Origin: Obrimoposthia wandeli
Lineage: Eukaryota
Length of the DNA stretch: 64,000 nucleotides
Reading direction: 5' to 3'
NCBI GenBank assembly: GCA_977020255.1
Contig: CDROCS010002342.1
Span: 310,001-374,000, forward strand
Position 1 is the stretch's first letter; every line of letters starts with the position of its first letter. Shown here in pieces: positions 16,310 to 56,191 of the stretch. The notes beneath the pieces were generated by a model. It had not been told where the DNA came from and searched no databases. It worked only from the letters and a program-made list of their open reading frames with translations. Made by a program: the position numbers and the translations under genes.

Positions 16310-17846
16310 TGTTGGGGTTTCTATATGAAACTAGATCCAACGTGAGTTCTTTATCAATCGGGCTTGCAGTTGTTCGTGGCCTATTTAAATTTTTCTTGCC
16401 TGTCTCAATATCTAATCTGAAGGTTTAGTGTAAGGTGTCGTGGGAGATGTGTAAGGAGTTGTGTGCACAGGGTAATGGAAAATTTCCCTTATTGTGGTGT
16501 AGTGGTTAGAGGGTTGATATTTGCCTGATTTTAGGTGGTGTATTCTAAGTAACACTGCTTGATTGTAGGAAAATTTTATTCGTTAGCTTACTCGAACTAC
16601 GTTCCTAAATATTACAACAACTAATCCTATGTCACTTCCCTACTTCACACAATTTTAATTAATCGATTTTAATCGTACCTATTAATTTTACAAGTTTCTA
16701 AATTCGGTGAAATTTGCTCTAACCTTTAGGGTCTAGTCCAAACTTCGGATGTACGAAAATTAACGTACTCGAGATTACTTGAAATAAAACTTATCCAAAT
16801 TACTGTAGATCAATATTGACAACTTCGGTTTTACTTATTAAATTTATCGTTAATCGATATCATTGAAATGTTTTTATCTCTCAAATCAATTGAACCAAAC
16901 GCTTTTAATTTATCAAAATCAATTGAACAAAATGCTCTTTACAATTTTCAAAATCAATTTAACAAAACGCTTTTAATCTCTCAAAATCAATTTAATTAAA
17001 CGCTTTTTATCTCTCGCCCTTCTCACCTTCCTTTAGTCCGTGGTATGCGTTCGTCCGTCTGTGAAGTCTGGTCTTTAGTACAGCTGAATTCCTTACGTTT
17101 GTTGGTCTTCCTTCAACTTCTGGAAATCAGAAATAACAACTTCTCTATTTAGGATTTGATTACCTTTCTCCTTGACGACTTGTGGCGATTTTAATTTTTT
17201 GGAACTGAGCACTTTCTAAACAAATTCAATTTTCAGGAATAATTCAACTTCTATGGTAATCAAAATAAATTTCTTTTTACTGAATTCTTTACCTCGACTC
17301 TATTTAATACTTCTGGAAATAATGTGACAATTTTCAGACTATTCTAGAACAATCAACTTCTGATTTCAGTTTCTCAATTCTTACGCTCAATTTGCCTCAA
17401 GTTGCACGCGTGATTGTGATGGATCTGACTCGGAAACTTCCTTTAAGTAATTTTTCCTAAGTGCTTTTCCTGGAAAGAGTAGATAATTTCCCTTAACTAA
17501 AAATCTTCTTACCTCCGGTTGATTACTGACTGGAGACGCTAATGGATAATGACTGGAGACGCTAATGGATTATTGGCTTCCTTTTTCTTTAATTACTCTT
17601 GGTTTTCGTTAATTACACTCTGTACTTTTTGGGCCCTTTTATAACTTAAACTTTCCCTTATATACAACACATCATACACTTGACCTCTTCAAGGTCTTAA
17701 AATACTTTTCGATTTTATTTCCTCCATTTTTATTCTAATTGAAAATTCTATTAAATTTTTTATTCTTTTAGCCTTGCTTTCAAGGTTTTATTTTCATATA
17801 TAAATAATTAATTATTTCTATAAATCCTAAAATCCTAATCCTAACA
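16310..17846. mobile_element. Family A solo-LTR-like element A1 (subfamily beta), nested in an older family A copy
   Basis: TGTTGGGGTTTC...CCTAATCCTAACA; TSD CTTT/CTTT. Confidence 0.9.
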
Positions 17847-17849
17847 CTT

Positions 17850-19070
17850 TTACTTTTCCAATGTAACTTTTCTTGTTTATATAACTTTTCTTTTTTCGAT
17901 ATAACTTTTCACTTTCTATAATGACCAAACTTACAAAATTCTTACGTACTTTCTAAATGATCAATTACAATTACATTGATCCAAATTATTATGCTTTTTT
18001 TTATCAATAGTGATTACAAATACACTGATCAAAATTATTACACTCTTTTCTAAATGATCAATTACAATTATAATGATCCAAACTATTATGCTTTTTATCA
18101 ATAGTGATTACAAATACACTGATCAAAATTATTACACTCTTTCTAAACGATCAATTACAAATATAATGATCCAAATTATTACGCTTTTTTATCAATAAGC
18201 AATTACAAATACACTTTTTACTACATTCTCTCAAATCACTCTATTATTAAAAATTAATTGTCCGGTAGGTCCACAGATTCCGGCTATTCTATATTAAGTT
18301 CCTCGTGTCTTGGTTGTTAACTCAATCAGGACAGATTCCCTCTAATTGTTCACTCCTGTTATCTGGCGGTTCCGTCTAGTTTGTCTGGCCCCTTTTTTGT
18401 CCTGTATAACCGAAATTAAATTCGTTTTTTCACGACGACGGATCTCTATATTTTTTGCTCTAATAAGTTAATTCTCACTTCTCGTAGTCCTGGATTTAGC
18501 TACTTTTTGGATATTCAATCAATTTCTCGAGAGATTATTGGCTTTGTTTTTTGTGCAATTTTCTTTTTGTCGATTTTGCTTTTATACATCTACCTTAAAT
18601 AACAATTTATCTACTCCACTTAAGCTAACTGCTCTTACCATCATCTGGATGGATGCCGGCTGTTTCAGTTCGCATGAGTCTTCAGACAGCACTTAGTTCT
18701 GTCTCGGATTTCTGTCGGCTGGTTCAGTTCCCAGCGAGCGTAGCTTCTTATAGTTCTGGATTATTCTTAATTGATATTCAACTTCGATTTCTCTTTATTG
18801 GGATTTGTATTTGCCTTCGCACGAAACTTTTCTTAATTTTATTTTTTGTCGATTTTCGTAAGTTGTAATTTTTTGATTTTTACTTAATTTGACTTTAACT
18901 TTCCAATATATCACGCAACGCACATGACCTCTTCAAGGTCCTAAATTATTTTAGTTTAGTTGAAAACAATTTTATTATTTTTTGTTTTGTTTAACCTTAA
19001 TTCAAGGTTATACTTTTTTCTTTTAAATAGTCGATTTTATTTTTAATTTTATTAATTCCCAATCTTAACA
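17850..19070. mobile_element. Right part of an older family A copy interrupted by A1; left end not located
   Basis: Has minus-strand donor (18638), TATA (~18905), both palindromes, ends ...ATCTTAACA; tandem repeat at ~17950-18210. Confidence 0.7.
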
Positions 19071-19364
19071 ATAGGTAATTATTCTCGTTGTCTTTCTAAT
19101 TTATCTCCGATCCAAACAAAGAAATTTGTCTGTCTCATTTTAAATAGCTCTTCTTTGTGATTCTTTTGTTTAAGTATTCTAAGTCGTCTGTGTTGCTTCA
19201 TTCAATTAGGTATCTACTGTAAGTCCGTGAATAGTACGGTTTAGATAAGTGTGATTCTATAATACAGTTTTTACTTTGCCAATTTTAAAAAAAAATTATT
19301 AATTTATCAATGTTTTTAAATTTACAGTAAGTTCTTGTATAAAACGGCTTTTAACTTTTGATTA

Positions 19365-19880: not shown

Positions 19881-22582
19881 TGTTGGGGTTTCTATATGAG
19901 ACTTATATAGATCCTCTTGAATGCGGAGGGCCCCAACGTGAGTTCTATAGAAGCAGGTCTTAAAGTTGGTCGTGGCCTACTTAATGTTATGGTTGCCTGT
20001 ATCAATTGCTTATCTGAAGGTGTTTGTTTTGATGTCTCTTAATCTGAAGGGTTTAGAACAATGCTTTCTAATGTATTAAATCGTTTATTGTTAACACACT
20101 AGACTAAAACGAAACAATACGTTTACGTACGTATTTTCTAAAAAGTTGTAGTAAAATTCCTAAGACTTCTGAAAGTCTCTACACCAGTGGGGATGAACCA
20201 CGTATCGATTTTAAGTTTAGGGTTGGTTGGTCACTAGAGTCTTGACTCTAAAAATGAGAGTAACTTTAACTTTATAGATTTTGCAGAGCTGTTGCTCTAA
20301 AAATAGGGAAGGAGTTTAGATAGGTTTTAAGGTAGTTTTACAGAATTTTGTAAGATTCAATCTTTAAATTAATATCAGAAAATTCAAAATGTTGATCAAT
20401 TTCAGTAAATCCAAACTTTAAATTAATATCGGCAATTCAAAATATAATTCAATTTCACTAAGTTCAACTTTAAATTAATATCGGCAATTCAAAATATAAA
20501 TCAATTTCACTAAGTTCAACTTTAAATTAATATCGGCAATTCAAATATAAATCAATTTCACTAAGTTCAACTTTAAATTAATATCGGCAATTCAAAATAT
20601 AAATCAATTTCACTAAGTTCAACTTTAAATTAATATCGGCAATTCAAAATATAAATCAATTTCACTAAGTTCAACTTTAATTTAATATCGGCAATTCAAA
20701 TATAAATCAATTTCACTAAGTTCAACTTTAATTTAATATCGGCAATTCAAATATAAATTAATTTCACTAAATTAAATTCAAAATGTTAATCAACTTCACT
20801 AAATTCAACTTTAATTTAATATCGGCAATTCAAATATAAATTAATTTCACCAAATTAAATTCAAAATGTTAATCAACTTCACTAAATTCAACTTTAATTT
20901 AATATCGGCAATTCAAATATAAATTAATTTCACCAAATTAAATTCAAAATGTTAATCAACTTCACTAAATTCAACTTTAATTTAATATCGGCAATTCAAA
21001 TATAAATTAATTTCACTAAATTAAATTCAAAATGTTAATCAACTTCACTAAATTCAACTTTAATTTAATATCGGCAATCCAAATATAAATTAATTTCACC
21101 AAATTAAATTCAAAATGTTAATCAACTTCACTAAATTCAACTTTAATTTAATATCGGCAATTCAAATATAAATTAATTTCACCAAATTAAATTCAAAATG
21201 TTAATCAACTTCACTGCTCAGCAGTCCCACTCTGCCTCTCACATCGCTCCCGTCTTCAGTTCCTCGATTTATGGTCCACTGAGAGCGGTTACTAATGGTC
21301 CGGAAAACTCCGCGGATTGAGGGGATGCGCTGCGATTGAGCTACTGCGGATTGCTGTGATGCCTCTGATCTAGTTCACTTGTCCTGGTAGTTTCCGTGGC
21401 TACTTTGCTGTCCGATTGCTGGTCTGGTGGCGCAGTAACGAGTTTGCTGGAGAGATGGCTCGATCGGAATCCTTCTATTATATCTATTAAATTTGTTGGG
21501 AATTTGCGTGATTTACCTCCTAGTTTCTTCTGTCTTCTTCTAACGATTCTTGAAATCGGCGAGATCCTACGAATATTCCGCTTGTTGTTTCTTGAAATCC
21601 TGGTGCGACGGCAAACTGCGAGCGATAGATAACTTGTGGGCGACTGCTACGTTGGCGAATTTCTTCTCGGAATTGGCAATTTCTTCTCGGAATTGGCAAA
21701 CTGCGAGCGATAGATAACTTGTGGGCGACTGCTACGTTGGCGAATTTCTTCTCGGAATTGGCAATTTCTTCTCGGAATTGGCAAACTGCAACTTCTGATA
21801 ACTCTTCTTCTCTAGCAAAATGGTAAAATTGTGGCGACCGCGACATTGGTGAACTGCTATTTATATTCCACGATCGATTTCCAGGTTGGCGCACGGTACT
21901 GCTGGCAACTGCAACTTCTGGAGTTGGTGTGTCGATCAACTGCTATCGACGCTCTGATTCTCGGAATTGGCGAACTCCTGACGCTAATTGCTTTTGCTGC
22001 GGCGCGAGTTGATTGACCTGCGGAGATTCGTTTCTCTCGCTGGTCCGATCCTGACGATGGCTGTTGCTGGCTCGATGCTAGTTGGCGCGATGATGACGAA
22101 TCGATTTGTTGCGGCGCTGTGGGAACTAATTAATTTCCTGTCAAGAACATGTCAGCTGGCACACAATCTAAGTGCACTTACTTTGATGCTGTAATTGATG
22201 CGGCTGCAGCTGTTTTGGGCTCCCACGATGACTTACACGATATTTCGATTTTCTAGAGATCCTAAATTGAGGTCACGAATCTAACTTCTGATTTTCTGGT
22301 CTAATTTGATGTTTGTTTCGCAGATCTTAATTGATGTCTTGCTATCTTCTATTTTCCGTTGATGATTATTATATTTTTTTGGGGCCCTTTTGTTTTGATT
22401 TAACTTAATATATACTCATGCATTACACACGACCTTCGTGGTCCTTTAATATTTATTTACTATTTAACAATTTATTTTTGATATAAAATTAAAATTTATT
22501 TAATTTTAACCTTGCTTTCAAGGATTTTCATTTTACTATAAAATCAATTTATTATTTAATTTTTCAATTCCTAAACCTAACA
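19881..22582. mobile_element. Family A element A2 (alpha), 2.7 kb
   Basis: TG...CA termini; TSD ATAT/ATAT. Confidence 0.92.
20405..21215. repeat. Minisatellite in A2: ~52-bp unit then derived 83-bp unit
   Basis: Unit starts at 20460/20512 (52 bp) and 20801/20884/20967 (83 bp). Confidence 0.9.
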
Positions 22583-23294
22583 ATATTATTATTCTTTTAG
22601 AAGCATTTAATTGTTTTTTACATTGATATATATGGTAAAATCGGTTTCAATTATTACTACAAATGAGAAACAAAGTATATTCTAAACGGAAGTGTTGTTT
22701 CCAACAACATGGGTTGTATTAGGATTGTTAATTATGCTGTGATCAGTCTCTTTGGGACTGAGATTCCTCGGATTGTTTCCCATTGATGTGTTGGGGTTTC
22801 TATACGAAACTTGGTACAGATCCTCTTATGTGCGGAGGGCCCCAACGTGAGTTCGAATAGAAGCAGGTCTTAAAGTTGGTCGTGGCCTACTTAGTGTTAT
22901 GGTTGCCTATCTCTTGTACTATCGGAAGGTATTTGATTTGATGTCTCTTATTCTGAAGGGTGCAAAAACAACTTGTTCTAATGTAGGAAATTGTTTATTG
23001 GTAATTCACGTAACTAAACACAACAATACGTATTTCTAAAAAGTATGGTAAAATTCCTAAGACTTCTGTAAGTCTCTACAACAAGTGGGGATGAACCACG
23101 TATCGATTTTACGTTCGGGGTAATCGAGATTTTAGAGTTATTCTTCTTCCTAGGTTGGTTAATCTATAACGCAACTCTCTTAAATTTCTTCGACTTGACT
23201 TCTTATGTGTGGATAAAGTTTCTTGAATGGGTAACTCTATCTGTTGTGTATTCGACCACGAATTGTCCACTGTGGGCAATGATTCTCCTAAAAA

Positions 23295-23700
23295 CCTAAT
23301 TGTCAACGATGACAATGAAAACTTGCTTCGAATTGTCAACTAGGACAATGAGTGTTTGTTCCGAATTGTCAACTAGGGACAATGAATGTACCGAATTGTC
23401 AACTAGGGACAATGAGTGTTTGTTCCGAATTGTCAACTAGGGACAATGAGTGGACCGAATTGTCAGCTAGGGACAATGAATCTTATGGGAAAAAACTCGT
23501 ACAACTCCTAATTGTCAACTGGGGACAATGAATATGATGGACAATCCTAATTGTCAACTAGGGACAATGATTTGGTTAAAGAGGCAAATCCTAATTGTCA
23601 GCTAGGGACAATGAATATGTTTAAAATATGTTACAATTTCGAATTGCCAACAAGGGGCAATGAATGTATCCTAATTGCCAACTAGGGGCAATGAATGCTC
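23295..23700. repeat. Array of 11 dyad repeats AATTGTCAACTAGGGACAATGA with variable spacers (in A3)
   Basis: Read directly; inter-repeat spacers about 5-30 nt. Confidence 0.9.
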
Positions 23701-23821
23701 TAGTCGGTGTTCTTACCTATGTTACTCGAGATTCCTGTAGTACTGGTGAGTCTGGATACGATCGTCTTCAATCAACTGCAACTTCTTTCGAGCTTTTCAA
23801 ATTTGGATACTGATTCAATCT

Positions 23822-24205
23822 TTAGACACTTTTCAACTTTAGACTTTTCAAATGTGGAATAACTTTCTCGGCAATTTGGCTTTTACTTTAGACACTTTTC
23901 AACTTTAGACTTTTCAAATGTGGAATAACTTTCTCGGCAATTTGGCTTTTACTTTAGACACTTTTCAACTTTAGACTTTTCAAATGTGGAATAACTTTCT
24001 CGGCAATTTGGCTTTTACTTTAGACACTTTTCAACTTTAGACTTTTCAAATGTGGAATAACTTTCTCGGCAATTTGGCTTTTACTTTAGACACTTTTCAA
24101 CTTTAGACTTTTCAAATGTGGAATAACTTTCTCGGCAATTTGGCTTTTACTTTAGACACTTTTCAACTTTAGACTTTTCAAATGTGGAATAACTTTCTCG
24201 GCAAT
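23822..24205. repeat. 66-bp tandem repeat, ~5.8 identical units (in A3)
   Basis: Unit starts at 23822, 23888, 23954 and onward. Confidence 0.92.
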
Positions 24206-25483
24206 TCTAAATTAATTTAATTCAATTTAATTCACCAACTTGACTTACTGGCTTTTCTGCTGGTTCTATTTTGTCTGTTGTGTCAACTTGGGTTATGAGT
24301 CAACGACTTATATACTCGATTATGGGTTGTCAGTCAACTCTTGACTGCTTCTGTTCTTCCGGGATTATGGGCTGTCAGTCAGCAATATTGGACAGCTGAA
24401 ATATATCAAGTACGGCAGCTGAAAAAAAATCAAGTTAGCTTACTGCACGAAAATGTGCTTACCGTTTCTTTGATTGACGTTCGTAATTTTCTAAATTGTT
24501 CCCTTTTGCTTTTTGCACTTTTGGTTAATTAACTCTAAACTTATATATCCTACACTATACACGACCTTCGTGGTCCTCCTAATTTTTATCCTAACTTCCA
24601 CTAATTTTAATTTTGAATCTAAAATTAATATTTAATTTAATTTTCAACCTTGCTTTCAAGGATTTTTATTTTAGTATTTAATCGACTAATTATTTTAATT
24701 TCTTAATTCTTAAACCTAACAGATGTGTGGGTACCAAGTTGCTGATGGTTCTCGTTGACGAGTTGAGTCGCTACCGCTTGTACAGTCTTGATACCTCCTA
24801 CGTAATGATTTGTTGCTGGGTTTCTTTTTAACTGTCTCTGCTGGTTCTTATATAATAGTTTATATCACCAGTTCTTATATAATGTATGGCTTCTTGTTCT
24901 TCGACTCGTGTAGTCACTTCCCAGAAGCGACAGAATTGCAAAAATAATGTAGTGATTAGGTTGGATCGATAAAATTTAATATATTATCTGTTGATTTAAT
25001 AAACCTAAATGTGAAATGCTAATTTGCATATAGCGATGGAATGATGTACAATCTAGATAATTATTATTTTTTATTTACTGTTAATAAATTTTAGTCTTTT
25101 TAGGAAGTTTAAAACGTACTTTTTTATTATGTGTTTGTGCTCCCCTAAAATAATTAACCACTTAACGTCTCTGATATGCTTTTTCACTTTATGGATGGTT
25201 GATATTATAATATTGAGCTAGCAAGGCTGGATCGTTTGGAGGATGAGGCGAACATTAATTTGTTTGTTGATTGTACAAAATCGGCCGCCATTCTGTTGAT
25301 AACTACTGGGTTACTGCCGAAAGGTAATTGTTACAATTGTTTTCACGAAATTGTCGCTACTGGTCGGAAATCATCAGGACAACTTTGTGTAAAATGAAGA
25401 AATGTATGCTCATGTGATTTTGTCGTCGTATCATGAAATGAATCAGTTTTTGTCAATATTAGTCAGGACACAGTTGATTCATA

Positions 25484-27346
25484 TGTTGGGGTTTCTATAT
25501 GAAACTGTATTCTATTATATATCCTCTTTAGTGGAGGGCCCCAACGTGAGTTCTATAGAAGCAGGACTTGTAGATGTTTGTGGCCTACTTAATGTTATGC
25601 TTGCCTGTCTCAATTCTTATCTGAAGGTTTGTTGTTTTGTCTTAATCTGAAGGGTTTAGAACAACGCTTTCTAATTGTAGGAAATCGTTTATTACTAAGC
25701 ACACCAAACTAACACGAATTAACACGTCTAAGTACGTTCTAAAAATTACAATAAAATCCCTAAGACTTCTGTAAGTCTCTATACAAGTGGGGATGATCCA
25801 CGTATCGATTTTAGTTTAGGGTTGGTTGGTCACTAGAGTCTTGACTCTAAAAAATGAAGGCAACATTAACTTTATAGATTTTTAAGTCAACTTTAATTCT
25901 TCAAAACTTTATGATAACAATAAATTCACTGTCAAAATCTTTCTCAAAAACTTTATAGACTTTTAATTCAACTTTTAATAAATTCACTTTCAAAATCTTT
26001 CTCAAAAACTTTATAGACTTTTAATCAACTTTTAATAATTTCACTGTCAAAATCTTTCTCAAAAACTTTATAGACTTTTAATTCAACTTTTAATAAATTC
26101 ACTTTCAAAATCTTTCTCAAAAACTTTATAGACTTTTAATTCAACTTTTAATAAATTCACTTCCAAAATCTTTCTCAAAAACTTTATAGACTTTTAATTC
26201 AACTTTTAATAATTTCTCACCAATCCGATGGGTATGTCTGCGTCCGGTGCGAGTTTGGTCCACGTGGTCCGTTTCCCGTACGATGCGGCGAGTTGGCTTT
26301 CGCTCCGATGTCTCTTGTTTGAGATCCTCCTCTGCTTCCCGATTGAGGGCTGATTCTGATTCTTTAAATAATTGATGCTTTTTATTCACAGGTTTCCTAC
26401 CTGTTCTGTCTTCTTTCCTGTTTTCGCTGCTTGATATTTCAAATCTGTGATTCGGATTCTGGGCTTGGCTTTGGTAGCAGAGCGTGGTTGGAAACACAAT
26501 TTCTGGGATTCTGCTTTTCAGTTCAATCTGTTCAAACTTGGGAGCAGAGCGTGGTTGGAAACACAATTTCTGGGATTCTGCTTTTCAGTTCAATCTGTTC
26601 AAACTTGGGAGCAGAGCGTGGTTGGAAACACAATTTCTGGGATTCTGCTTTTCAGTTCAATCTGTTCAAACTTGGGAGCAGAGCGTGGTTGGAAACAATT
26701 TATGTGATTCTGCTTTTAATCCGTCGTGCAAATGTACTCTTCTTTTATCCTCGAGACTCGATGACGAATTGCTGGCCTCTGCACAAATCCTAACTTCTTC
26801 TAATGCAATTCAATTAGTAATGCGACTAAAGCACTTACTACTAGGCAATTGGCTGCTGGCGGGTTCCCACAATATTTCCCGCGCTAATAGCTCGGTAATG
26901 GATTTCTCTTCTTACGGCAGCTGCTTGGCTCCCACAATATTTTCCTGCGCTAATGGTTAATAGCACTTAGCCTAATGGATTTTCTTACCTTGATCCTGGA
27001 TGGCTGGCGTAGTTCCCAGCGTCAATGATTCTTAATCAACTTCTTCTGTTTTTCTTCTAATAATTCTTAATCAGCTATTTAATTATCTTCTGTCTTTCTT
27101 CTAATTTGTCTTCTTTGTTTTTTGTGGCTATATCTTTTTTGGGGCCCTTTGCTTTAGTTTTAACCTCTATATATATTCACGCATCATACATGACCTTCGT
27201 GGTCATTAATATTTAAATTACCATTTTAATTTTCAATAATTTAATTCTAATCTAAACTTTATTTTAATTATGACCTTGTTTTCAAGGATTTTATTTTACT
27301 ATAAATTCAATTAATTATTTAATTTTACCAAAACCTAATCCTAACA
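25484..27346. mobile_element. Family A element A4 (alpha) with ~58-bp x5 and 67-bp x3.4 tandem repeats
   Basis: TG...CA; TSD CATA/CATA; 67-bp units at 26477, 26544, 26611, 26678. Confidence 0.92.
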
Positions 27347-42700: not shown

Positions 42701-44275
42701 TGTTGGGGTTTCTATATGAAACTGTGTTCTAACATAGATCCTCTTTAGTGGAGGGCCCCAACGTGAGTTCTATAGAAGCAGGACTTAAAGATGTTTGTGG
42801 CCTACTTAATGTTATGCTTGCCTGTCTCTAAGTTTATCTGAAGGTTTGTTGTTTCTATTTTGGAAGGGTCTATAACACGCTGTCTAGTTGTAGGAAATCT
42901 TTTATTACTAAACACACTAACTAAACACGTCCTAACTACGTTCTAAAAATGACAAACTATTCCTAAGACTTTTTACAAAGTCTCTACACAAGTGGGGATG
43001 ATCCACGTATCGATTTTAAGTTTATGTTTGTTTTAGTTGCTAGAGTCTTTACTCTAAAAATAGGGATTGATTTTAGAGAGCTGATGCTCTAAAATAGGGA
43101 ATGAGTTTAGAGAGCTAAGTTTATCGAATGTAAAATTAACTTCTTTTTCTCTCAGTTTATCAAATATAAAATCAACTTCTTTTTCCTTAGTTTAACACAA
43201 ATTAGTTACCAAAACAATAATGCAAATTCAGTTTATCAAATGTAAAATCAACTTCTTTTTCTTTAGTTTAACAGAAAAATGAGTTACCAAACAATAATGT
43301 AAATTCAGTACATCAAATGTAAAATCAACTTCTTTTTCTTTAAAAACTTCAATTTAGTATAACAACTAATATAGCAATTTTATGAGTTACGTTTTTACCT
43401 CTAGTTCTTCCTTTGTTCCGCTAATTGATCTCGACTCTCGTCCCAATTCTGGTAGTTGCACGATTTAGTTGCACGATTTAGTTGCACGATTCAGTTGCAC
43501 GATTCCGTTGCGCGATTCAGTTGCGCGATTCAATTGCACGATTTAGTTGCACGATTTAGTTGCACGATTCAGTTGCACGATTCCGTTGCGCGATTCAATT
43601 GCACGATTTAGTTGCCCGATTTAGTTGTGTCCCTGCAAGTCCAAATCTTGCTTTTATAGGATTCTACTAAATTCTCTCTTAAGAAAATTAATTAATGGCA
43701 CTTAGCTAAGTGCACTTACTATCGTCTATCTCCGGAGCAGTCTGGGATCCGGTTGACGGTTCGCACTTAGTAGTCTCGAGTCAGCTGGATCAATTCTCAG
43801 CTACAAAGCGAAATCTGAGCTCCTGTTGATATATTAAATTGATAGTACTCAACTAAATTATACTTCTCCTTGCTGCTTGTCGGTTGCTGGAGAGTGCCGG
43901 CTGGATCAATTCTCAGCTACAAATGTATTGGAGTCTGGGACTAAGTGCGTCAGTGGTATGGTTTCCACGGTTTGTTACTTACTTCTTCTTGTTTTTCGTT
44001 AATTGCCTTTTCTTGATTTCTGTTAGTTACTTTTCTTTTTCTTAATTAACTCCATATATTTCTCATTTTTGGGGCCTTTTTGATTAACTTTAACTTCTTT
44101 ATATATTACACATTAAACATGACCTAACCAGGTCCTAATATTTTCCCGCTAATTTTATCTTTGAATTTAATTCTTATAATTAATTTATCCTAATTTATAA
44201 CCTTGCTTTCAAGGATTTTTATTTCAATATAAATAGTTTAATTATTTTAATTAATTTTAAAACCTAATCTTAACA
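42701..44275. mobile_element. Family A element A7 (alpha) with 13-bp GTTGCACGATTYA x~13 repeat (43455-43625)
   Basis: TG...CA; TSD TTTT/TTTT. Confidence 0.9.
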
Positions 44276-44301: not shown

Positions 44302-45885
44302 TGTTGAGACTACAGTTATTTAATTTCTTCTGAAATCATCTAGTTCGTGAGTTCTTAATTGTATATAACTTGTGTGGAAGGTTTATCCTATGTAATCTCA
44401 AAATTTGAAGGTTAGTTGTTTTGGGTGTGTAGATGATCGTATTATAAAACACACAAATCGTAGCAGAGTTTAAATTTAATTTCAGTATACGTGTTGGGGT
44501 TTTCTAATAAAACCTGATTATTAGAATCCTCGTATGGAGGCCCCCAACGTGATTTCTGTAGTAATATGGCTTACATATGGATGTGGCCTACCTATTTTCA
44601 ATTATCTGAAAGTTTGACTCACTATCTAAAGGTTTTCTATTTGTGCTGCTTTTTTGTTTTGTAGATACTGTGTTTAGGGTAACTGGGGGACCCTAAAACT
44701 ATTGTTTTGTTGTGTAGGATTAATGTACAAGCCAGTTAGGCCGATTTAGATTTTCGATTCAAAAAGGGTTTGTGATACACATCACATAACAATTAGCAAA
44801 ACTAAACAAGAACCAATCGACATTGACAATATTCCTCTGAATATATCAGGGTTTGGACTACCGTTTTGCTGGTTAATTCTCGGCTAACCCATATATGAAT
44901 CGTCCTCGGTGTACTAATCCCGTTTGCAGGGTTATAAGAACAAGTTATGATCGAGCTTTTACTATTGTTCTTTATTTAGGTAACACACTGTGGAATGAGT
45001 TTTAAACAGAAACCACAACTAGTTCTCCACTTATACTCCTCTTAATTCGCAAATACTCAATGGTGGCACTCCTATCGTCTTAGTTATAATTCTTGAAACA
45101 CGTATTATTAAAAAATTATTATTGGGAAATAACTTATTAATGTTGAGTGAATTACTAAATTGATACAGATTATTACTGTAAATGAATATTAAACAATCAC
45201 TAATTGATACAGATTATTACTGTAAATGGATATTAAACAATCACTAATTGAATCAGATTATTACTGTAAATGAATACTAAACAATTACAAAACTGATAGA
45301 TAGTTGTCCTTATGTGCTTGACAGTTAACTTCGGAATTCGTTCTGATGTTGTCCTCACTGTGTGATAAATGTTCCAACGATTGTATGATCCTCTACTGCG
45401 TCTTGTAACTACGATTCACTTCTGGAATACTGGATATCATCGATATTACTGCAGTCCGGATCTGATAATTGCATAATAAATCGACTGCATTTTTATAATG
45501 TGACTTGCGTTTCTGCGCTTACTAATTCGATCGAAATTTGCAGATAAATTATTGATTCTATTTTTAGAGTTTTTACGTTGTCACTTATTTCTTCTAGTCT
45601 CAATTTTCTTCAGCGTTTTTTCATTTTCCTTGTACTTATATACATATCTCATGACCTCTCAAGGTCTCAATTTATTTAGTAAACACATCCTAATTTATTT
45701 CTAAAATGTATTTTCTTTTAATTTGTTTTATTCTAACCTTCAATATTTCGAGGTTAATTTAATACTATAAATAAGTATGTATTTATTCATTTTACACTAT
45801 TCCTAATCTAACATACGAAACTAATCGCAGATTACACAAAGCCTGTTTCATGTTTATAAGTAGAAAGCAAGTTAAATATCCAACA
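44302..45885 (+). mobile_element. Family C short element split by A8
   Basis: TGTTGAGACTACAG...CTAGTTCGTGAGTTCT left end; ...ATATCCAACA right end; no TSD recognised. Confidence 0.55.
44492..45813. mobile_element. Family A element A8 (gamma)
   Basis: TG...CA; TSD TACG/TACG. Confidence 0.9.
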
Positions 45886-46970: not shown

Positions 46971-47496
46971 TGTTGGAGTTATTTCACTAGTTAGGTTAAC
47001 ACCAGATTTTATGAGTTCTTAACATAATAGATCTTATTGAAGGACCTACCTAAATAACTAAAATATTAATGTTTTTTCTAACAAATTGTGAGTAAATATC
47101 TCTACAGTAACTCGCTATTACTTATTTACGATAAGCAAAACAATTTAAATGATTACTACTTATTTATGATAAGCAAAACAATTTAAATGATTATTACTGA
47201 TGCTCTATTGATTTTAATAATAGGGTAGATTCCTTGGTCTATATAACTTCAAAATGCAAGTTATTCTGAACTACTTCTATAGGGTTTTATCAAAACACGT
47301 TATTATAACCCACTTTTATTTAACACAATAATATAAGTGGTATACAAGCAATAGGGTAGTACAATAGTCAGTTATTTAGATAAAATTAAATTAAATGTGT
47401 AAACTTTAATACAATTTTTATAAAAGATTACTTCAATTAATATTCAAATTCAAGACGATATAAATTGTATCAAGTATAAAACTTATTAGTTTAACA
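46971..47496 (+). mobile_element. Family B short LTR-like element (~0.5 kb)
   Basis: Collinear with 61240-61408 + 63169-63459; TGTTGGAGTTATTTC...TTTAACA. Confidence 0.7.
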
Positions 47497-47512: not shown

Positions 47513-48847
47513 TGTTAGGGTTTCTATATGGAACTTCTAGATCCTCGTATGGAGGCCCCCCAACGTGAGTTCTATAGCAATAAGGCTTGCAGTTGTTCGT
47601 GGCCTATTTAGATTTTTTTTGCCTGTCTCTAATCTGAAGGTTTTTTGATCTGTGTCGTGGGAGATGTGTAAAGAGTTGTGTGCACGGGTTACTGGAAAAT
47701 TTCCCTTATTGTGGTGTAGTGTATGAAGGGTTGGCACTAGCCTGATTGCAAGGGTTTGTTCAAAACAACACAGCTTGATTGTAGGAAAACTTTATTTTCT
47801 AACTCACTCAAACTACGTTCCTAAAAATTACAACAATTAGTCCTATGTCACTTCACTAAACTTCACACAATTTCTAATCGGAAGGTTTTGTTTACGATAT
47901 GTGTCGTGGGAGATGTGTAAGGAGTTGTGTGCTAAGGGTACATGGAAAATTTCCCTTGTTGTGGTGTAGTGTATGGTGGGTTGATACTTGCCTGATTTCG
48001 AGGGTTCGTTCAAATCCAAGACTCTTTAACCAACTTTTAAATTTCAAAATTCTTTTGAATCAACTTTAAAATGCAAACAAATTCTTTAATCAAATCTACC
48101 AAGATTATTACTTCAAAATTCTTTTAATCAAATCTATCAAGAGACGGCTTCCTCCAAACCTCTCATCTTCATCTTGGACTTCGGGGTATCCTCTCGTCTG
48201 TCGGTTCTTCCTTAAACGTCTGGAAATCAGAATAATAACTTCTCTATTAAAACTCGATTACGTTTCTTCTTCACACTCTGATCCGTTATTGATAACAAGC
48301 AAGGATTTATATTGGTAATTCTGATCCGTTATTGATAACAAGCAAGTGTTGGCTCCACTTTTTTAGAATGCAATTCTTCTGCTCCTTTATATAGTCTCTT
48401 TTTCTAAAAATAATTAAATTGCTTATCTTAAGTGCACCTACCTCGCTGTTTAGATGCCGGCTGACTAATTCGCAGTGTCTTCGTTACTGCACTAATGGAC
48501 TGGCTGCTTCTTCTCAGAGTTCGACTCTAATGGATCGGCTGCTTCTCAGGTTTTCTGGAATTGTTCTTACTTTTCTTCTTAATTACTCTCTATTTCTTTT
48601 TAATTACTCTCTATTTGTTCTTAATTACATTCAGTTCTTTTTGGGCCCTAAACATTTCCTTATATACAACACATCATACACTTGACCTCTTCAAGGTCCT
48701 AAAATATTTGTCGAGTTTATTTCCTCCAATTTTATTTTAATTAAATTTCTATTTAATATATTATTCTTTTAGACTTGCTTCCAAGGTTTTATTTTCTTAT
48801 ATAAATAATTAACTATTTCTAAAAAATTTTAAATCTTAATCCTACCA
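47513..48847. mobile_element. Family A element A9 (beta)
   Basis: TGTTAGGG...CCTACCA; TSD CTAT/CTAT; internal duplication at ~47880-48010. Confidence 0.9.
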
Positions 48848-48899: not shown

Positions 48900-50857
48900 T
48901 GTTGGGGTTTCTATATGAAACTTATAGATCCTCTTGAATGTGGAGGGCCCCAACGTGAGTTCTTATAGAAGCAGGACTTAAGGATGGTTGTGGCCTACTT
49001 AATGTTATAGTTGCCTGTCTCAATTCTTATCTGAAGGTGTTTGTTTTTCGATGTCTCTTAATCTGAAGGGTTTAGAACAATGCTTTCTAATTGTAGGAAA
49101 TCGTTTATTGTTAACACACTAGACTAACACAAAGCAATACGTTTACGTACGTATTTCTAAAAAGTTACAGTAAAATTCCTAAGACTTCTGTAAGTCTCTA
49201 CACAAGTAGGGATGAACCACGTATCTATTTTAAAGTTAAGGTTAGTTGATCCCTAAAGTCTGGACTCTTAAAAATGAGGGTAACTTTGACTTTATAGATT
49301 TGAATCAACTCTAATTCTTCAAAATTTTATACTTTTCAAATTACGATAATTCAAAATCAATTATTTTCTAACTTTATACTTTTCAAAATACGATAATTCA
49401 AATCAATTATTTTCCAACTTTATACTTTTCAAAACACGAAAATTCAAATCAATTCTGTATCAACTTTATACTTTTCAAATTACGATAATTTAATTCAATT
49501 ATTTATCAACTTTATACTTTTCAAAATACGATAATTCAATTCAATTATTTATCAACTTTATACTTTTCAAATTACGATAATTCAAATCAATTCTTTATCA
49601 ACTTTATACTTTTCAAATTACGATAATTCAAATTAATTATTTATCAACTTTATACTTTTCAAAACACGATAATTCAAATCAATTCTTTATCAACTTTATA
49701 CTTTTCAAATTACGATAATTCAATTCAATTATTTATCAACTTTATACTTTTCAAAACACGATAATTCAAATCAATTCTTTATCAACTTTATACTTTTCAA
49801 ATTACGATAATTCAATTCAATTATTTATCAACTTTATACTTTTCAAAATACGATAATTCAATTCAATTATTTATCAGCTTTATACTTTTCAAATTACGAT
49901 AATTCAATTTAAAATCAGATTTCACTAAAACTTAGGAGTGAAAAACAAGTTTACAATCAGTTTAAATTAGCAGTCCACTCTGCCTCTCACCTCGCTCCTG
50001 TCTTCAGTTCCTTGATTTATGGTCCACTGAGAGTGTCTACTACTGGTTCGGAAAACTCCGCAGATTGAGAGAATGTGCTGCGATTGAGCTACTGCGGATG
50101 GTTGTGATGCCTCTGACCTGATGCACTCGTCAGTTGTTTCTGTTGCTACTTTGCTGTCCGATTGCTGGGTATGGTGACGCAGACGAAGGATTGTCGGATG
50201 GATCGATCCGAATTCGTTTCGCGTTTCTTCTCTGTTTCTTTTTTCTGGCAACTCGAGTTACTATGTTGGTATTTATAGAAAGTTACCTCCTAGTTTCTTC
50301 TCTGAACGCCACTAATTGAGTTGCGCCGGGTGTCGCTAATTGAATCCTCTGAAAATGTAGTGGATTAATTTTGCACCTAATTTTAAGTGCTTTACCTTGT
50401 CTGGAATCCTGCTGCTCGAATTCTCGCTCGCTTCTCCGCTGTGACGTTGATTTGCACTAATGGACTCTTGTCTGAGTGCTCTTCTTAATTCTAAGTTTTC
50501 TTCTTTTTTCTTCTCGGCCCTATATGTTGGTTTGGAATTCCTTCTCAACAATTTTCTTCTTAATTGGATTTTTCTTCTTTTTTCTTAATAAACTTTTCGC
50601 AATAATCTTCTTAATTAGATTTTCGTTTTTCTTAATTGATTCTTGTTTTTAGGGGCCTTTTGCTTTTAATTTTAACCTCCTATATACTGCACATCATACA
50701 TGACCTTCGTGGTCCTTAATATTCACTTTACCTTTTAATTTTAACAATTTAATTCTAATATTTAATTTTATTTAATTTATAACCTTGCTTTCAAGGATTC
50801 TTATTTCACTATAAATTCGATTAATTATTTTATTTTTATCAATTCCTAAACCTAACA
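48900..50857. mobile_element. Family A element A10 (alpha, close to A2) with 46-bp x~13 repeat (49325-49910)
   Basis: TG...CA; TSD TTTT/TTTT. Confidence 0.92.
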
Positions 50858-51424: not shown

Positions 51425-54019
51425 TGTTGGGGTTTTCTAAATATTTACCTTAGAATCCTCGTATGGAGGACCTCAACGTGAGTCCTATAGATATAGGTAT
51501 TATTGATGTTCTAGGCTACCTAGTCTGATTTGTTTGAAGGTGTATTTATGCTGTGTTTGGAATTATATATAGGTTATTGGATAATTTCCCAATAAGTTAG
51601 TGTAGTTTAATGTTGGACTGATTTGTAAAGCAATTGAATTAGTTTGGGTAAGCCTAAACCAAAAATGTGTAATTTTTGAGCCAGATGACTTCTGCAAATC
51701 GATTTTTCCGGTGTATGTGATGGTTTGTTTTTGGACAGATTTGGTCTTGGGTTTCCTCCCAGTATTTTAAATTAATTAACTTTCAGGAGCGTAACGTGTC
51801 TTCAAAAAAAATAGTTGTATTTATTCAACATTTTATTCTATATAAGCAGTAGGAAACTAACACTTAGCGCACATATGCAAAATTAGCAAAACAACAAACG
51901 TACAAATATAACAACTAACAACTTCTTATAACAACGTCTTGTGTCACAGAATAATATGTAATTTTCATTTCCCCGTAATTTCGTCCCTTTTATTTATTTT
52001 AATTTTTAATATTCAGGATTATTAAAATGTCCTTTGTCAGAACTATAAATGTTGGGGTTTCTATATGAAACTAGATCCTCGTATGGAGGCCCCCAACGTG
52101 AGTTATATAGCAATAGCGCTTACAGATGGATGTGGCCTGTTTAGATTTTCCTTACTCATCTTAGTTTCAAGTCTGAAAGTTTTTTGTATTAGTGTATGGT
52201 GGATTGTGGACAGAGTTGTGTGCACAAGGTACTAAAGGGTTCCCTTATTGTAGTGTGGTGTGTCGAGGGATTTATAGTGCCCTACATCTATATGTAGTTA
52301 CCTGAATTAATCCAGTCAACTGTAGGAAAGAACTATATTATTATACCAAACTAAAAATATTTCTAACAGTTTACAACGTAGGGCGTTTAATAACAATTAC
52401 CTTAGTCACACCGAAAAATCGAAGAGCTGACCACCTATTTGATTTTACTTCTTACTCAAGTCCTCCTAGTCAATCAAAATGTGTTTGTCAGTCCAGTCCT
52501 CTGACTAACAAAACAATTTTGCTTCGAACACAATTTAATTGATTTCCAACGATATAGCGTGTCGTTGAAATACAAAATTTCCCGTAATAATTTTAGATTA
52601 GTTCGGTGTCGGCTATTGGGCGTTTAATCAAGTTATTTTGTTTGACTGGTTCAAAATGTCCGTAGTTCGATTAGCCCAGGATTTTCAACGGTAACAATAT
52701 AACTTCTAACTTCAGTTATTGTATCTCTGATTTGTAGTTTATATAAGTTAACTTTCTAAAATATTTGATTAAACTTTCGCTTAAATTTAAGATGAATCCA
52801 ATTCTTAATTACTCAAATGTGTTTCACTTTATATAGGTTTAATTTTCAAATGTTCAATTAACTTTGATTAAAATCAAGACAAATTCGATTCTTAATTACT
52901 CAAAAAAAGGGTTCAATTTATATGGTTTCAAATTCTAAATTCCGTACAGATGATTTGGAGGTCCTGGTGGCTTGAGTCCTCGTCCGTATTTGTTTCGTTG
53001 GCTGGTGGGATTATGCTGTCCGCTCTAGCTCGATTTGCGGTCCTCAAATCGACAGGGCTTCCTACACGATTCGGTCTCAGTTGTAATTTGCGTGGTTCGT
53101 GTTTCTTATCTTGCTGGTGGATCCTGTTACTGCTTCTTCTACTTGTCAACTCTGCTTGGTTGTTTCAACAAATTCTGTTTCTTCTCTTTCATGGGTTTAA
53201 ATCGATTCGAAATTGGTAAATTATGTACCCGTTCGCGACTTTTAGTCCTAATTCTGCCGGTGTAATTAATTTATGTTTTATCTTCTAATATAGAGCCGTA
53301 CAGCAGCTCACAGTTTGTGTTTGTCTATTATCAGACGATTTCTTCCAAATCCATTAATCGGATCTCTGTAGGAATAATTCGTTAATGGATTTTCTTGTCT
53401 ACAATTATACAATCTGTTCGAGATTCCTGGAATGAATAACTGAGCCTCAAATTAATGCATAGATGTCGCAATGTTAATACTGACTTGCTGCAAATATTAC
53501 TAAATATATTATAATTTAAACATGTTTCTTCGTCTTTATTTTATTATTCCTGGAATTACTTATTTCACTTACTGTTTTCTTAATCGGTTGCCGGCTGTTC
53601 TGTTCTCAGCAGCTGGATTCTTCTCACGAATGGCAATTGATTTTCTTGCACTGGCTTCTTAATTAACACTGGCTGCTTCTCGGTTATTGTTAATTTTTTT
53701 TGAATTCCTTGGGCTATTTTAGTAATTTTAAAATCTCTTATATACCTGCACAAGAAACATAACCCTTCAAAGTCCTAAAATTATTAAATCCCATTTTATT
53801 TAATTTAAATTTTTTTAGTTATTTATTTCACTAATTTCACTTTCTTTAACCTTACTTTCAGGGTTATATTTTCTATATATATATATATATATATTAATTA
53901 AAATATTAAAAAAATATTAATTAAAAAATATTTCATTAAATTCGTCCGTTTTTGGACCCATTAACACATTGATTTCTTTATTTTATTATTCTAATGGATT
54001 TTGCTGCGTGAACCTAACA
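51425..54019. mobile_element. Family A element A11 (gamma, degenerate) hosting A12
   Basis: Left TGTTGGGG; right AACCTAACA at 54019; TSD AATG/AATG. Confidence 0.7.
52050..53936. mobile_element. Family A element A12 (beta) nested in A11
   Basis: Left end intact after TAAA; right end degenerate, TAAA at 53937-53940. Confidence 0.8.
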
Positions 54020-54757
54020 AATGTAATATTTTTAATGTTAGCTATTGGTAAAATCCACGTCGTAGAAGCAGTATCGATGGAGTAGCTATCAGCGTGGTAA
54101 TTATTAAATACACCTTCGGTGATGTCATGTTCTTATACAAGACTCATGTTCAGATCGGACACATGGAATTGCGAAGGGTAGAGCTCCACATAAGAGTTTG
54201 TAGAAAACCTTGTTCAACAGTGGTTTCTGTCACACAACTTGACGTATCTGGGTTAACAGTACCACTATTCTCGCATGAGAAGAAACATATGTCGAGGTGT
54301 CGCTGCGTCTTGAGATACTGCAAGCTCTTGCGTTTTCGTGATCACGACCAGAATTGAAGCATGCCAGTTGGTGTTGATTATCAAACTCAGTGGACATCTG
54401 TATCGTGCTAAACTCCACTTATCCCTGCTTCACACAATAGTACGATTCAATTCTAGTATTTATTCATCATTTTATAGTACTGTGTCAATTTTCTTCGCCA
54501 CAAATATATTCCTAAATTTTGATATTTTTAAGTAAATTTCAATTAATGTAATTTATTTATTTTCATTCATTTTAATCGTCATTGTGACCTCGAGTGAAAT
54601 TCAAATTACTTGATATTTTAAATGTATTTAATCCTTATGTTAAATAATAATTAACCATATTTTAGCTTTTCCTGCAAAATTATCTTTCAGCTGAAATTGT
54701 AAATCAATTATTACAATGTCTGGAAATTTGAATATGTAAATTATTCAATCAAGCAAA

Positions 54758-56191
54758 TGTTGGGGTTTCTATTTGAAACTCTTAAATAGATCCTTGTATG
54801 GAGGCCCCCAACGTGAATAGGGGGAGTTCTATAGCAATAGGGCTTGCAGTTGGTCGTGGCCTATTAAATTTTTCTTACCTGCCTCAATTTCTAATCTGAA
54901 GGTTTTGTTTTCGATCTTTGTTGTGGAGATATATAAAGAGTTGTGTGCACGGTTACTGGAAAATTTCCCTTATTGTGGTGTAGTATATGGTGGTTTGGTA
55001 CTTGCCTGGTTGTAGGGGTTTGTTCAATTCAACACTGCTTAAATGTAGGAAATCTTTATTCTCTAAACTCACTCTAACTAGGTTCCTAAAAATTACAACA
55101 ATTAGTCCTATGTCACTTCACTAAACATCACACAAATGGGGATGTCTTGACGTATCGATTTTAATCGGTCTAACAAATTTACAAGTTCTTTACTCTTTAT
55201 TTCAAAATACAATTTCTCTTTTAGTCAAAACACAATTTATCTTTTAATCAAAACGCAATTTATCTTTTTTCTTTAAATTCAAAATCTCTTTCAGTTCTCA
55301 TTTTAAACTCAAAATCTTTAGAACCCAACCCTTTCAGTTCTCACTTTAACACTCTTTACTTTAAAATCAAAATCTTTCAGTCCTCTCACATTTTCTTTGG
55401 AGCGTCTGTTGTCTTTCTGGTATGTCTGAAAAGCAGAATAATAACCTCTTTAATTGGCCTTTTCTGTCGATTCCAAGATGAAAAAACTCGTTTATATCTC
55501 TCACCTTTTCTCGGCTCGTCTGTTTATTTCACAATCTTCTTTTATGAGCAAATCTTCTTTTCTTTATCTTTGAGTCAATCTTCTTTTATAATTAAATCTT
55601 CTTTTTTGTGTTAAGCCACTCTTCTTTTATAATTAACTCTCTTTTGTGTGTTAGGCAACTCTTCTTTTATAAGTAACTCTCTTTTTTGTGTTAAGCAACT
55701 CTTCTTTTATAAGCCTAAATAAAACAATTAATTTACACTTAGTTTAATGCGCTAACCTTGCAGTCTGGCTACCGGCTGTTGGTTCCCTGTTCGTTCTTCA
55801 CTGCTAATTCTGGATAAAGTCGTAGTGGCGCTTAAAGGGTGCTAATGGATATTTGTAGTTACTTTTGGGTTTCGTCTTCTCTATACTCTGTTGCTTTCTC
55901 CCAGATTATCTTAATTGACTGCCTTGTATTTGTCCCACTATTCTGTACTCTGTTAATTGATTCTAATTTTCGTTCTGGTAATTTCTGGGCCTTTTATTTT
56001 ATTCCAACTTTCTTATATATAACGCAAGAAACACGTGACCTCTTCAAGGTCCTAAAATACTTTTTGATTTTATTTTATTTAATTTTAATTTCTATTTTAA
56101 TTTTCTTTTCTTTTAACCTTGCTTTCAAGGTTTTATTTTCTTATATAAATAAATTAATTATTTTCAAAATATTAAAATCCTAGTCCTAACA
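54758..56191. mobile_element. Family A element A13 (beta); no matching TSD
   Basis: TGTTGGGG...CCTAGTCCTAACA; flanks CAAA vs AATT. Confidence 0.85.

Follow-up and report, generated by a model that had tools for sequence, protein, structure and literature searches.

The region is best read as at least 15 separately integrated solo long terminal repeats (LTRs) of one old LTR-retrotransposon family, comprising several subfamilies and having the minus strand as sense, a reading to which we assign a probability of roughly two in three. The promoter-, splice- and poly(A)-type motifs recurring on the minus strand most likely belong to the LTRs themselves, as their promoter, splice donor and poly(A) site, and do not represent hidden minus-strand genes. 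About half of the stretch from 16 to 56 kb of the window (the whole 64-kb DNA analysed) consists of copies of this single repeat family, and the copies are mobile-element insertions with target-site duplications (TSDs), not host loci.

Insertion boundaries and element class

At least 15 independent insertions of the family were found in the window (Table 1). Read at its boundaries, each copy showed TGTT...AACA termini, and at least 12 copies comprise the + strand termini TGTTGGGG...CCTAACA; as strand ends, these are ...CCTAACA on the + strand and ...CCCCAACA on the minus strand. The two termini are mutually inverted at about 8 of their first 12 positions, and this short imperfect inverted repeat together with the TG...CA ends corresponds to a solo LTR. 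Perfect 4-bp TSDs flank 11 copies and include nine different sequences (ATAT and TTTT occur twice each), while one copy matches at 3 of 4 positions, in two the TSD is uncertain by 1-2 nt and a further copy is truncated. A TSD of fixed length, whose sequence varies from copy to copy, is characteristic of LTR retrotransposons. In one copy beyond the range of the sequence-only reading (c61409), the two flanks correspond to segments lying side by side in a paralogous repeat at 46967-47397, which is the pattern expected if the element had inserted into that repeat. The distinct TSDs and this uninterrupted paralogous repeat point to integrase-type insertions.

Several other classes were rejected. 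A tandem or segmental duplication of a host locus, as for a lncRNA gene family, does not agree with the individual flanks and TSD of each copy. When the window was compared with itself, in no copy did one end match the other, in contrast to the direct terminal repeats of a terminal-repeat retrotransposon in miniature or a LARD. Helitrons and Helentrons need TC...CTRR, a 3' hairpin and no TSD, whereas TG...CA and a 4-bp TSD were determined here, and a Penelope-like terminal repeat was discarded because the window contained no Rfam match at the gathering score and the TSD is fixed at 4 bp. Terminal inverted repeats of Ginger-type DNA transposons (TGT...ACA, 4-bp TSD) comprise tens to hundreds of bases, compared to only about 4-12 imperfectly inverted end bases in the copies. 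Within the 64-kb window neither a full-length element with gag-pol nor an orientation-fixing primer-binding site or polypurine tract was seen, and the protein collection, metagenome contigs and prokaryote contigs searched contained no outside copy of the family; both findings count against the preferred reading.

Table 1. Copies of the repeat family and exons of the host gene in the window. Signals of the copies are on the minus strand, with TATA, GGGCCC-like motif and AATAAA given by their start; AG, end of the candidate micro-intron; listed, GT as given by the sequence-only reading.
Feature	Position (strand)	Length (nt)	TSD	TATA	GGGCCC-like motif	Donor GT	AG	AATAAA	Remarks
Host exon	679..849 (+)
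Host exon	7216..7548 (+)
Host exon	12824..12982 (+)
Host exon	14544..14657 (+)								left border of 45-kb intron
c16310	16310..17846 (-)	1537	CTTT/CTTT	17664	GGGCCC 17636	17512 (listed)	17470	16580	ends TGTTGGGG...CCTAACA (+ strand); acceptor of sequence-only reading 17120
c19070	17847..19070 (-)					18638 (homologous block)	18594		truncated: 5' part only, no poly(A)/U5 part; left boundary not found; right end CTTAACA at 19070
c19881	19881..22582 (-)	2702	ATAT/ATAT	22414	GGGCCC 22387	22181	22138	20089	52- and 83-nt tandem repeats across 20351-21215
c22789	22789..24721 (-)	1933	GATG/GATG	24547		24462	24419	22999	66-nt tandem repeat 23820-24206
c25484	25484..27346 (-)	1863	CATA/CATA	27175	GGGCCC 27147	26988	26950	25693	58- and 67-nt repeats in between
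c32202	32202..34109 (-)	1908	ATAT/ATAT	degenerate	GGGCC 33928	33661 (homologous)	33620	one-base variant
c40789	40789..41898 (-)	1110	TGTG/TATG (3/4)			41751 (donor block)	41705	40994	shortest copy; promoter-to-leader segment gone by internal deletion
c42701	42701..44275 (-)	1575	TTTT/TTTT	44105	GGCCCC 44076	43719	43678	42906	perfect 12-nt palindrome 43707-43718, overlapping donor
c44492	44492..45813 (-)	1322	TACG/TACG	45642		45522 (listed)			variant subfamily; GT without flank homology to family donor block
c47513	47513..48847 (-)	1335	CTAT/CTAT	48666	GGGCCC 48648	48441	48404	47796	acceptor of sequence-only reading 48220
c48900	48900..50857 (-)	1958	TTTT/TTTT	50686	GGCCCC 50657	50395	50349	49109	46-nt repeat, 12.6 units, 49326-49907
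c51425	51425..54019 (-)		AATG/AATG						variant copy; c52050 nested inside; resembles main family in terminal parts only
c52050	52050..53935 (-)		ambiguous	53744		53572 (listed)			nested in c51425; left end TGTTGGGG at 52050; right end degraded, right boundary approximate
c54758	54758..56191 (-)	1434	ambiguous by 1-2 nt	56019	GGCCC 55991	55756	55715	55060	acceptor of sequence-only reading 55426
Host exon	59830..59955 (+)								right border of 45-kb intron
c61409	61409..63164 (-)	1756	CTTA/CTTA						variant copy

Promoter and poly(A) motifs and the probable sense strand

The sequence-only reading had described a TATA-type box, a GGGCCC-like motif and an AATAAA in constant order on the minus strand, and the first two of these were confirmed as conserved. 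As stated, the + strand has CTTATATA, which reads TATATAAG in the minus direction, from 17657, 48659 and 56012 onward, and the TATA core is common to 10-11 of 11 aligned copies. A GG(G/C)CC motif follows 27-29 nt downstream of the TATA box in six copies and 18-19 nt downstream in two more. The stated positions 16575, 47791 and 55055 likewise mark the start of TTTATT, which reads AATAAA on the minus strand, and TTTCCTACA comes after it. The claimed presence of AATAAA at the homologous spot in nine copies agrees with our count of 9 of 10 main-family copies, the tenth showing a one-base variant. A CA at +10/11 and a G/T-rich stretch from about +18 to +31 complete a three-part poly(A) site. The constant order does not extend to the shortest copy (c40789), which has lost the segment from TATA to donor.

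Every LTR needs a promoter together with a poly(A) site on the same strand, and here both are found, by motif only, on the minus strand, consistent with a U3-R-U5 organization. Five indirect lines of evidence favor the minus strand as sense. Poly(A) hexamers total 155 on the minus compared to 51 on the + strand, and the minus strand is A-rich (A 0.35-0.43 vs. T 0.26-0.31), as sense strands of retroelements usually are. The mean pairwise identity is 0.70 in the terminal block that starts at the poly(A) site, 0.59 in the 5' block and about 0.26-0.31 in the middle; the highest identity thus lies where it fits a U5. Counting against the minus-sense reading are the nearly palindromic TATA core and an AT content high enough for weak signals to be recognized on both strands.

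If the + strand were sense, the copies would comprise a long variable U3 on the left and TATA, R and U5 in the last ~190 nt, while the minus-strand signals would form an antisense unit embedded in U3. We consider this improbable. The variable, tandem-repeat middle does resemble a typical U3, the TATA core gives a TATA in the + direction as well, and 8 of 12 copies have a TATAAA-like hexamer at a distance of about 50 nt from their right end. However, no conserved canonical poly(A) hexamer was found in the last 200 nt of the + strand, which is T-rich, and of the two terminal blocks, R-U5 would have to be the one with the lower conservation. Moreover, the most conserved motifs, which are palindromic and lie upstream of TATA in the minus direction, would fall downstream of the start. 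Finally, 15 sense-oriented LTRs and no antisense one in the host introns would be contrary to the known bias, the strand presented to the host gene being the signal-poor one in 15 of 15 copies on the minus-sense reading. The same observations speak against the antisense passenger gene inside U3 that had been suggested as the second interpretation of the minus-strand signals.

The putative splice donor and a candidate micro-intron

For the proposed donors and acceptors the letters are present: GT was found at 12 of 12 positions and CAG ends at 8 of 8. As conserved signals, only part of the donors can be maintained. A donor GT in a homologous block is recognizable in at least nine copies, and of the 153 columns aligned across copies no more than four are invariant, two of them being its G and T, in windows set only relative to this GT, the site picked by the sequence-only reading. 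The commonest base occurs at donor positions +1 to +5 in 11-13 of 13 copies, at +6 in 5 and at +7 in 8 of 13. As a class, donor-like sites show chance density on the minus strand (61 vs. 55.9 ± 7.2 in shuffles), the GT of c44492 stands outside the homologous block (Table 1), and that of c16310 fails to align with the donors of the two copies most closely related to it. Acceptor-like sites number about four per copy, and homology of the acceptors originally proposed is limited to three closely related copies, c16310, c47513 and c54758.

A pyrimidine tract with an AG 38-47 nt after the donor was determined in 11 of 13 copies compared to a background of 18%, and the tract sequences before the candidate AG differ between copies. 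Most likely, the donor represents either the major splice donor of the element, with acceptors beyond the LTR in full-length elements, or the 5' end of a 38-47-nt micro-intron.

In an extended form of the second option, an R of 0.9-2.3 kb would contain this micro-intron near its 5' end, the intron would carry a palindromic or hairpin element (TAAGTG/CACTTA), and each solo LTR would be an autonomous Pol II unit giving a capped, micro-spliced and polyadenylated non-coding RNA of about 1-2 kb. We regard this tentative extension as unlikely. Being inside the micro-intron, the palindromic element would be carried only by unspliced RNA. An intron wholly within R should be lost from progeny unless the template is the unspliced RNA, which also counts against the best explanation. 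If true, the reading would describe an intron-bearing retroelement terminal repeat in an integrase-type element, and its retention would bear on how retroelements combine splicing with the copying of unspliced RNA.

A further explanation, which we judge very improbable, is that the motifs have no past or present role and reflect chance matches in A-rich DNA together with blocks conserved for other reasons, e.g. as protein-binding palindromes, the 'donor' being one half of the TAAGTG/CACTTA inverted repeat. The chance density of donor-like sites and the number of acceptor-like sites per copy are in line with this, as is a perfect 12-nt palindrome overlapping the donor in two copies. The same holds true for the donor hairpin, which was not significant by folding (z of -2.4 to +1.0) and whose stem is present in about half of the copies only. 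Nonetheless, GTAAG is retained where the palindrome half is lost, as reflected by the drop at +6 and +7, and the tract and AG exceed the background, the tracts differing in sequence between copies. In addition, all three canonical poly(A) parts are present, and the uniform orientation described below needs strand-specific signals.

Orientation within the host gene

The copies are hosted by a nicotinic-receptor-like, flatworm-type gene on the + strand, whose colinear exons (Table 1) were located by tblastn with flatworm and other Cys-loop receptor proteins; the second, taken as 7198-7548, matches Pfam Neur_chan_LBD with E = 1.3e-32. Matches to the protein P0089 run on across the 45-kb intron (residues 215-244, then 243-283). 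Since there is no gap in protein coordinates between the flanking exons, no exon is missing between 14.66 and 59.83 kb.

All 15 copies showed the same orientation, which would be antisense to the host gene on the minus-sense reading, with 13 of them inside the 45-kb intron. The two-sided binomial probability of such uniformity is 2.4e-4 for 13 copies and 6e-5 for 15. An antisense bias is described for fixed ERVs in genes (PMC6466679). Copies in the opposite orientation would have introduced their poly(A) and splice signals into the host pre-mRNA, and selection would have eliminated such copies. The antisense bias of intronic LTRs is usually given as roughly 2:1, and the 15:0 observed here is more extreme. 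The uniform orientation could alternatively originate from a one-strand small-RNA (piRNA-type) source locus or from orientation-biased integration, in favor of which are this ratio and the filling of about half of the 16-56 kb stretch by one family. Planarian PIWI-bound small RNAs mainly target LTR elements (PMC8532177). We give this explanation the lowest probability of all; it would add to the solo-LTR reading and not replace it. Since the host exons are intact and colinear across the region, ordinary selection within the intron is enough to explain the bias. A 15:0 orientation in one intron would illustrate cleanly, in a natural setting, how insertions are purged in a strand-specific manner.

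Proposed layout of the LTR

Based on the motifs, from which we infer the borders as well as any transcription or splicing, the minus-sense LTR would begin with a short U3 of about 200 nt containing the conserved palindromic motifs and the TATA box. The start region would lie at the GGGCCC-like motif 27-29 nt past TATA, followed by an R of about 0.9-2.3 kb, which would comprise a leader of 124-357 nt, the conserved 5' splice site, copy-specific tandem repeats and the complete poly(A) site. The best-conserved part would be a U5 of about 185-280 nt. The predicted R amounts to 55-85% of the LTR; we know of no R region near 0.9-2.3 kb, and the predicted one is far longer than any known to us. Two further points count against so long an R. 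A variable, repeat-bearing middle is more typical of a U3 and would fit a + sense LTR, and a 5' LTR would have to bypass the strong poly(A) site located 1-2 kb past its start, for which we can offer no tested mechanism.

The sequence-only reading had concluded that each copy is a self-contained lncRNA gene and a candidate for an undescribed system, with an extraordinarily long intron-containing R as the first option. A long R with minus as sense is favored by our data, while the long introns as drawn are not. Its statement that no ORF is conserved holds: on the minus strand, peptide matches between copies occurred only in the conserved 3' DNA block, in different frames. The terms 'self-contained lncRNA gene' and 'undescribed system' are overstated, since a one-strand promoter and poly(A) site belong to every LTR, the copies are TSD-flanked insertions and in several of them at least one of the signals has been lost. 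If our reading is right, the situation is mostly ordinary: a promoter and a terminator come with each solo LTR, and the copies retained in introns are only those pointing away from the host gene. With an R of the predicted length, each solo LTR would nevertheless be a complete transcription unit.

Comparison with known systems

Antisense units of the HTLV-1 type are protein-coding and are initiated from the 3' LTR of a provirus of known orientation. Under the passenger-gene interpretation, the copies would share with them a spliced, polyadenylated transcript opposite to the sense strand of the element; in contrast, no conserved ORF is present here and the evidence puts the sense on minus, the same strand as the unit.

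In deltaretrovirus and foamy virus LTRs a long R of about 0.2 kb holds the major splice donor, with acceptors outside the LTR; the term 'long R region' has reportedly been applied to BLV in one paper. The likeness to the copies is functional only and concerns a splice donor in R past the start site and an R that is long relative to U5, while the R predicted here would be 0.9-2.3 kb.

According to the passage of PMC6431247 that cites Arkhipova et al. 2003, Penelope-like retroelements retain a short intron in their terminal repeat. Likewise, the terminal repeat described here would hold a short spliceosomal intron persisting in genomic copies. Penelope-like elements differ in having no TG...CA ends and no fixed 4-bp TSD, and often carry hammerhead ribozymes, whereas no Rfam family matched here.

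A further comparison is with solo LTRs of the Ty3/gypsy or BEL/Pao type, including the giant planarian elements Burro/GYPSM1 with kilobase LTRs bearing repeats (PMC6431247). The copies in the window differ from them in that no internal gag-pol, primer-binding site or polypurine tract was seen, and by the share of the LTR taken up by the predicted R. Shared are the TG...CA ends with a short imperfect inverted repeat, the fixed 4-bp TSD and the many diverged copies, as well as the one-strand promoter and poly(A) site, the internal tandem repeats and an AT-rich host of flatworm type, with Burro being likened by these features and not by sequence.

Repeat family and insertion sites

Self-comparison showed a diverged repeat family at 16.3-56.2 kb and one further copy at 61.4 kb, with identical strand throughout. 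On the + strand, the copies start with TGTTGGGG and finish with CCTAACA. Perfect 4-bp direct duplications flank 11 copies (CTTT, ATAT, GATG, CATA, ATAT, TTTT, TACG, CTAT, TTTT, AATG and CTTA); of the remainder, one copy matches at 3/4 positions, two have an ambiguity of 1-2 nt and another is truncated. Furthermore, one LTR copy sits within another, and the flanks of the copy at 61409 correspond to adjoining segments of a paralogous repeat at 46967-47397. The copies are separate integrase-type insertions and not a duplicated locus. The repeat at 46967-47397 is an uninterrupted copy of a second, unrelated family; in another copy of that family, the LTR 61409-63164 separates the two parts (61236-61408 and 63165-63394). 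The regions around 28100 and 47018 also share a short similarity.

Since the left and right ends of each copy showed no mutual resemblance in the self-comparison, every copy represents one terminal repeat and not a two-LTR element in miniature. The 64-kb window showed no gag-pol remnant, no tRNA gene and no match to an Rfam family. Judged from these features, a solo LTR appears to be the reading that fits the copies. Tandem duplication, TRIM/LARD, Helitron, Penelope-like and Ginger elements were also considered, and each failed on the tested features. A protein search with an LTR-borne ORF and pattern scans of metagenome and prokaryote contigs revealed no copies outside the window, full-length ones included; the lone pattern match, on the metagenome contig Ga0136642_1001250 (L002; 60% GC, otherwise dissimilar to the window), is due to chance.

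Host gene and orientation of the copies

The window is AT-rich with ~30% GC, which is compatible with planarian base composition (PMC11410931). Receptor proteins matched colinear exons of a Cys-loop (nicotinic-receptor-like) subunit gene with very long introns, including a Pfam Neur_chan_LBD match with E = 1.3e-32. Among named proteins, those of trematodes (Dicrocoelium, Heterobilharzia) come closest to the exons, with no more than ~59% identity, so that the host is probably a flatworm distant from all annotated species. Since the exons 14544-14657 and 59830-59955 are contiguous in protein coordinates according to tblastn, one ~45-kb intron extends from 14.66 to 59.83 kb.

All 15 copies are oriented alike, and 13 of them lie antisense inside this one intron (two-sided binomial probability for 13 same-way intronic copies, 2.4e-4). 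Antisense is the direction in which genes tolerate fixed LTRs (PMC6466679). A one-strand small-RNA source locus might also account for the extreme 15:0 orientation; this would supplement the solo-LTR reading and not substitute for it.

Other mobile-element traces were observed as well. The same intron contains, in sense orientation, a hAT-family transposase-like reading frame with a Spin-doc zinc finger, DUF4371, a hAT dimerisation region and one in-frame stop. Its relatives are scattered over octopus, whipworm, hydra, fish and arthropods with at most 80% identity, and this patchy spread suggests horizontal transfer. By eye, a short ORF resembles the C-terminal portion of a mariner/Tc1-type transposase; it has no Pfam match. 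The segment 27347-32201, between LTR copies and outside the LTR family, is T-rich on the + strand, shows 10 (+) vs 31 (-) poly(A) hexamers and may harbour other antisense-oriented insertions.

Promoter and poly(A) motifs and the probable sense strand

The sequence-only reading had proposed that each element hides a spliced, polyadenylated minus-strand unit, either as a long R region or as an antisense passenger gene inside U3. All coordinates quoted for it were exact, and its promoter and poly(A) motifs were confirmed. The TATA core is common to 10-11 of the 11 aligned copies, a conservation equal to that of the other top motifs of the family, namely the terminal 10 nt and the CCTTG...CAAGG palindrome. 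The GGGCCC-like motif was recovered as GG(G/C)CC 27-29 nt past the TATA in 6 copies and 18-19 nt past it in 2, where a start site would be expected. AATAAA occupies a homologous position in 9 of 10 main-family copies, with a one-base variant in the tenth. Downstream of it come CA (+10/11) and, on an otherwise A-rich strand, a G/T-rich stretch (~+18 to +31). By their sequence, these three parts would form a complete animal poly(A) site. No ORF is conserved across the copies. The claimed constant order of the signals did not hold for the shortest copy, which has lost the segment from TATA to leader.

Upstream of the TATA, the two best-conserved motifs are both palindromic, CCTTG-N4-CAAGG and GACC...GGTC, the latter of which resembles paired AGGTCA-type half-sites.

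Five indirect lines concur in pointing to the minus strand as the sense strand. Only the minus strand carries the conserved, complete poly(A) site. Read in minus direction, the TATA has the conserved palindromes upstream and the start-region motif downstream at canonical distance. Moreover, the minus strand of the copies is A-rich, and the uniform antisense orientation in the host intron agrees with it. Finally, conservation is highest in the block that runs from the poly(A) site to the terminus (0.70 vs 0.59), as would be expected of a U5 adjoining the primer-binding site. On this minus-sense reading, the LTRs had been viewed from the wrong strand, and the "hidden unit" would consist of U3 (~200 nt), a predicted R (~0.9-2.3 kb) and U5 (~185-280 nt).

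Each copy comprises conserved blocks of ~200-260 nt at the right end and ~350-450 nt at the left end. The middle is unalignable and contains copy-specific tandem repeats with units of 13-94 nt. Each copy has arrays of its own, situated after the donor and before the poly(A) site; in the arrays tabulated below, the units measure 13-83 nt with 83-100% matches. If R were that long, every solo LTR would be a complete start-to-poly(A) unit and transcription from a 5' LTR would have to pass a strong poly(A) site. An intron located entirely inside R would be expected to be lost, unless the replication template was unspliced RNA. A literature search for long R regions or introns within LTRs of invertebrate elements found none. 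These problems of a long R would be escaped by an LTR with + strand sense and a long variable U3, but such an arrangement is at odds with all five lines of evidence for the minus strand, and we regard it as improbable. The minus-sense layout is preferred here.

Coordinates of features within the window
Feature	Position	Strand	Basis or remark
Cys-loop (nicotinic-receptor-like) subunit exons	679-849, 7216-7548, 12824-12982, 14544-14657, 59830-59955	+	tblastn with receptor proteins, colinear
Tandem-repeat arrays	20351-21215, 23820-24206, 25919-26216, 26471-26717, 32791-33053, 43454-43627, 49326-49907, 55579-55712		
Palindromes upstream of TATA	~60-75 and ~150-165 of each copy; e.g. 27272-27285, 48686-48700	-	positions counted on the minus strand of the copy
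Perfect 12-nt palindrome TAAGTGCACTTA	22169-22180, 43707-43718		overlaps the conserved GT donor
hAT-like reading frame	57617-59440	+	
Mariner/Tc1-like short ORF	4494-4739	+	

Candidate splice signals and a candidate micro-intron

As a class, donor-like sites are not enriched, with 61 strong ones on the minus strand vs 55.9 +/- 7.2 in shuffles. One donor lies within a homologous block; in c47513 (the copy at 47513..48847 on the minus strand) it reads CAGCCGG and, 17 nt on, GAG/GTAGGTGCAC. In an alignment whose windows were anchored solely on this GT, the site chosen in the sequence-only reading, only 4 of 153 columns are invariant, and the G and T of the donor account for two of these. The proposed acceptors are homologous in only 3 closely related copies, and in one of these the corresponding donor is misaligned with the other two.

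A different acceptor is suggested by the first AG 38-47 nt past the conserved GT: 11 of the 13 copies have a pyrimidine-rich tract ahead of this AG (6-9 of 10 bases), with a sequence that varies between copies. The same configuration was found from 18% of arbitrary positions in the copies, a value to be taken as a yardstick and not as a probability, the copies being related. The similarity between copies stops at about this candidate AG. Micro-introns of ~37-85 nt are abundant in flatworm genomes, with a preference for transcript 5' ends (PMC6530080, PMC13594981), and therefore a candidate micro-intron after the conserved donor is plausible in these LTRs.

The donor region also contains inverted repeats of the type TAAGTG/CACTTA. 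Two copies have them as a perfect 12-nt palindrome; other copies retain the spaced form CACTTA...TAAGTG, followed by TAATTA-rich sequence. This repeat might serve in protein binding or in RNA pairing; a hairpin after the donor was not significant by folding. GTAAG is retained even in copies without the palindrome half, which favours a splice site over a pure protein-binding palindrome.

Interpretation

Altogether, the original observation is accurate and largely non-random, but there is no support for reading it as a concealed antisense gene or an undescribed system. The sequence features would be best explained if the copies were ordinary solo LTRs, placed antisense within a host intron, whose predicted R is unusually long and which possibly carry a micro-intron. 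An R region of such length, with variable tandem repeats inside, is unlike any LTR known to us.
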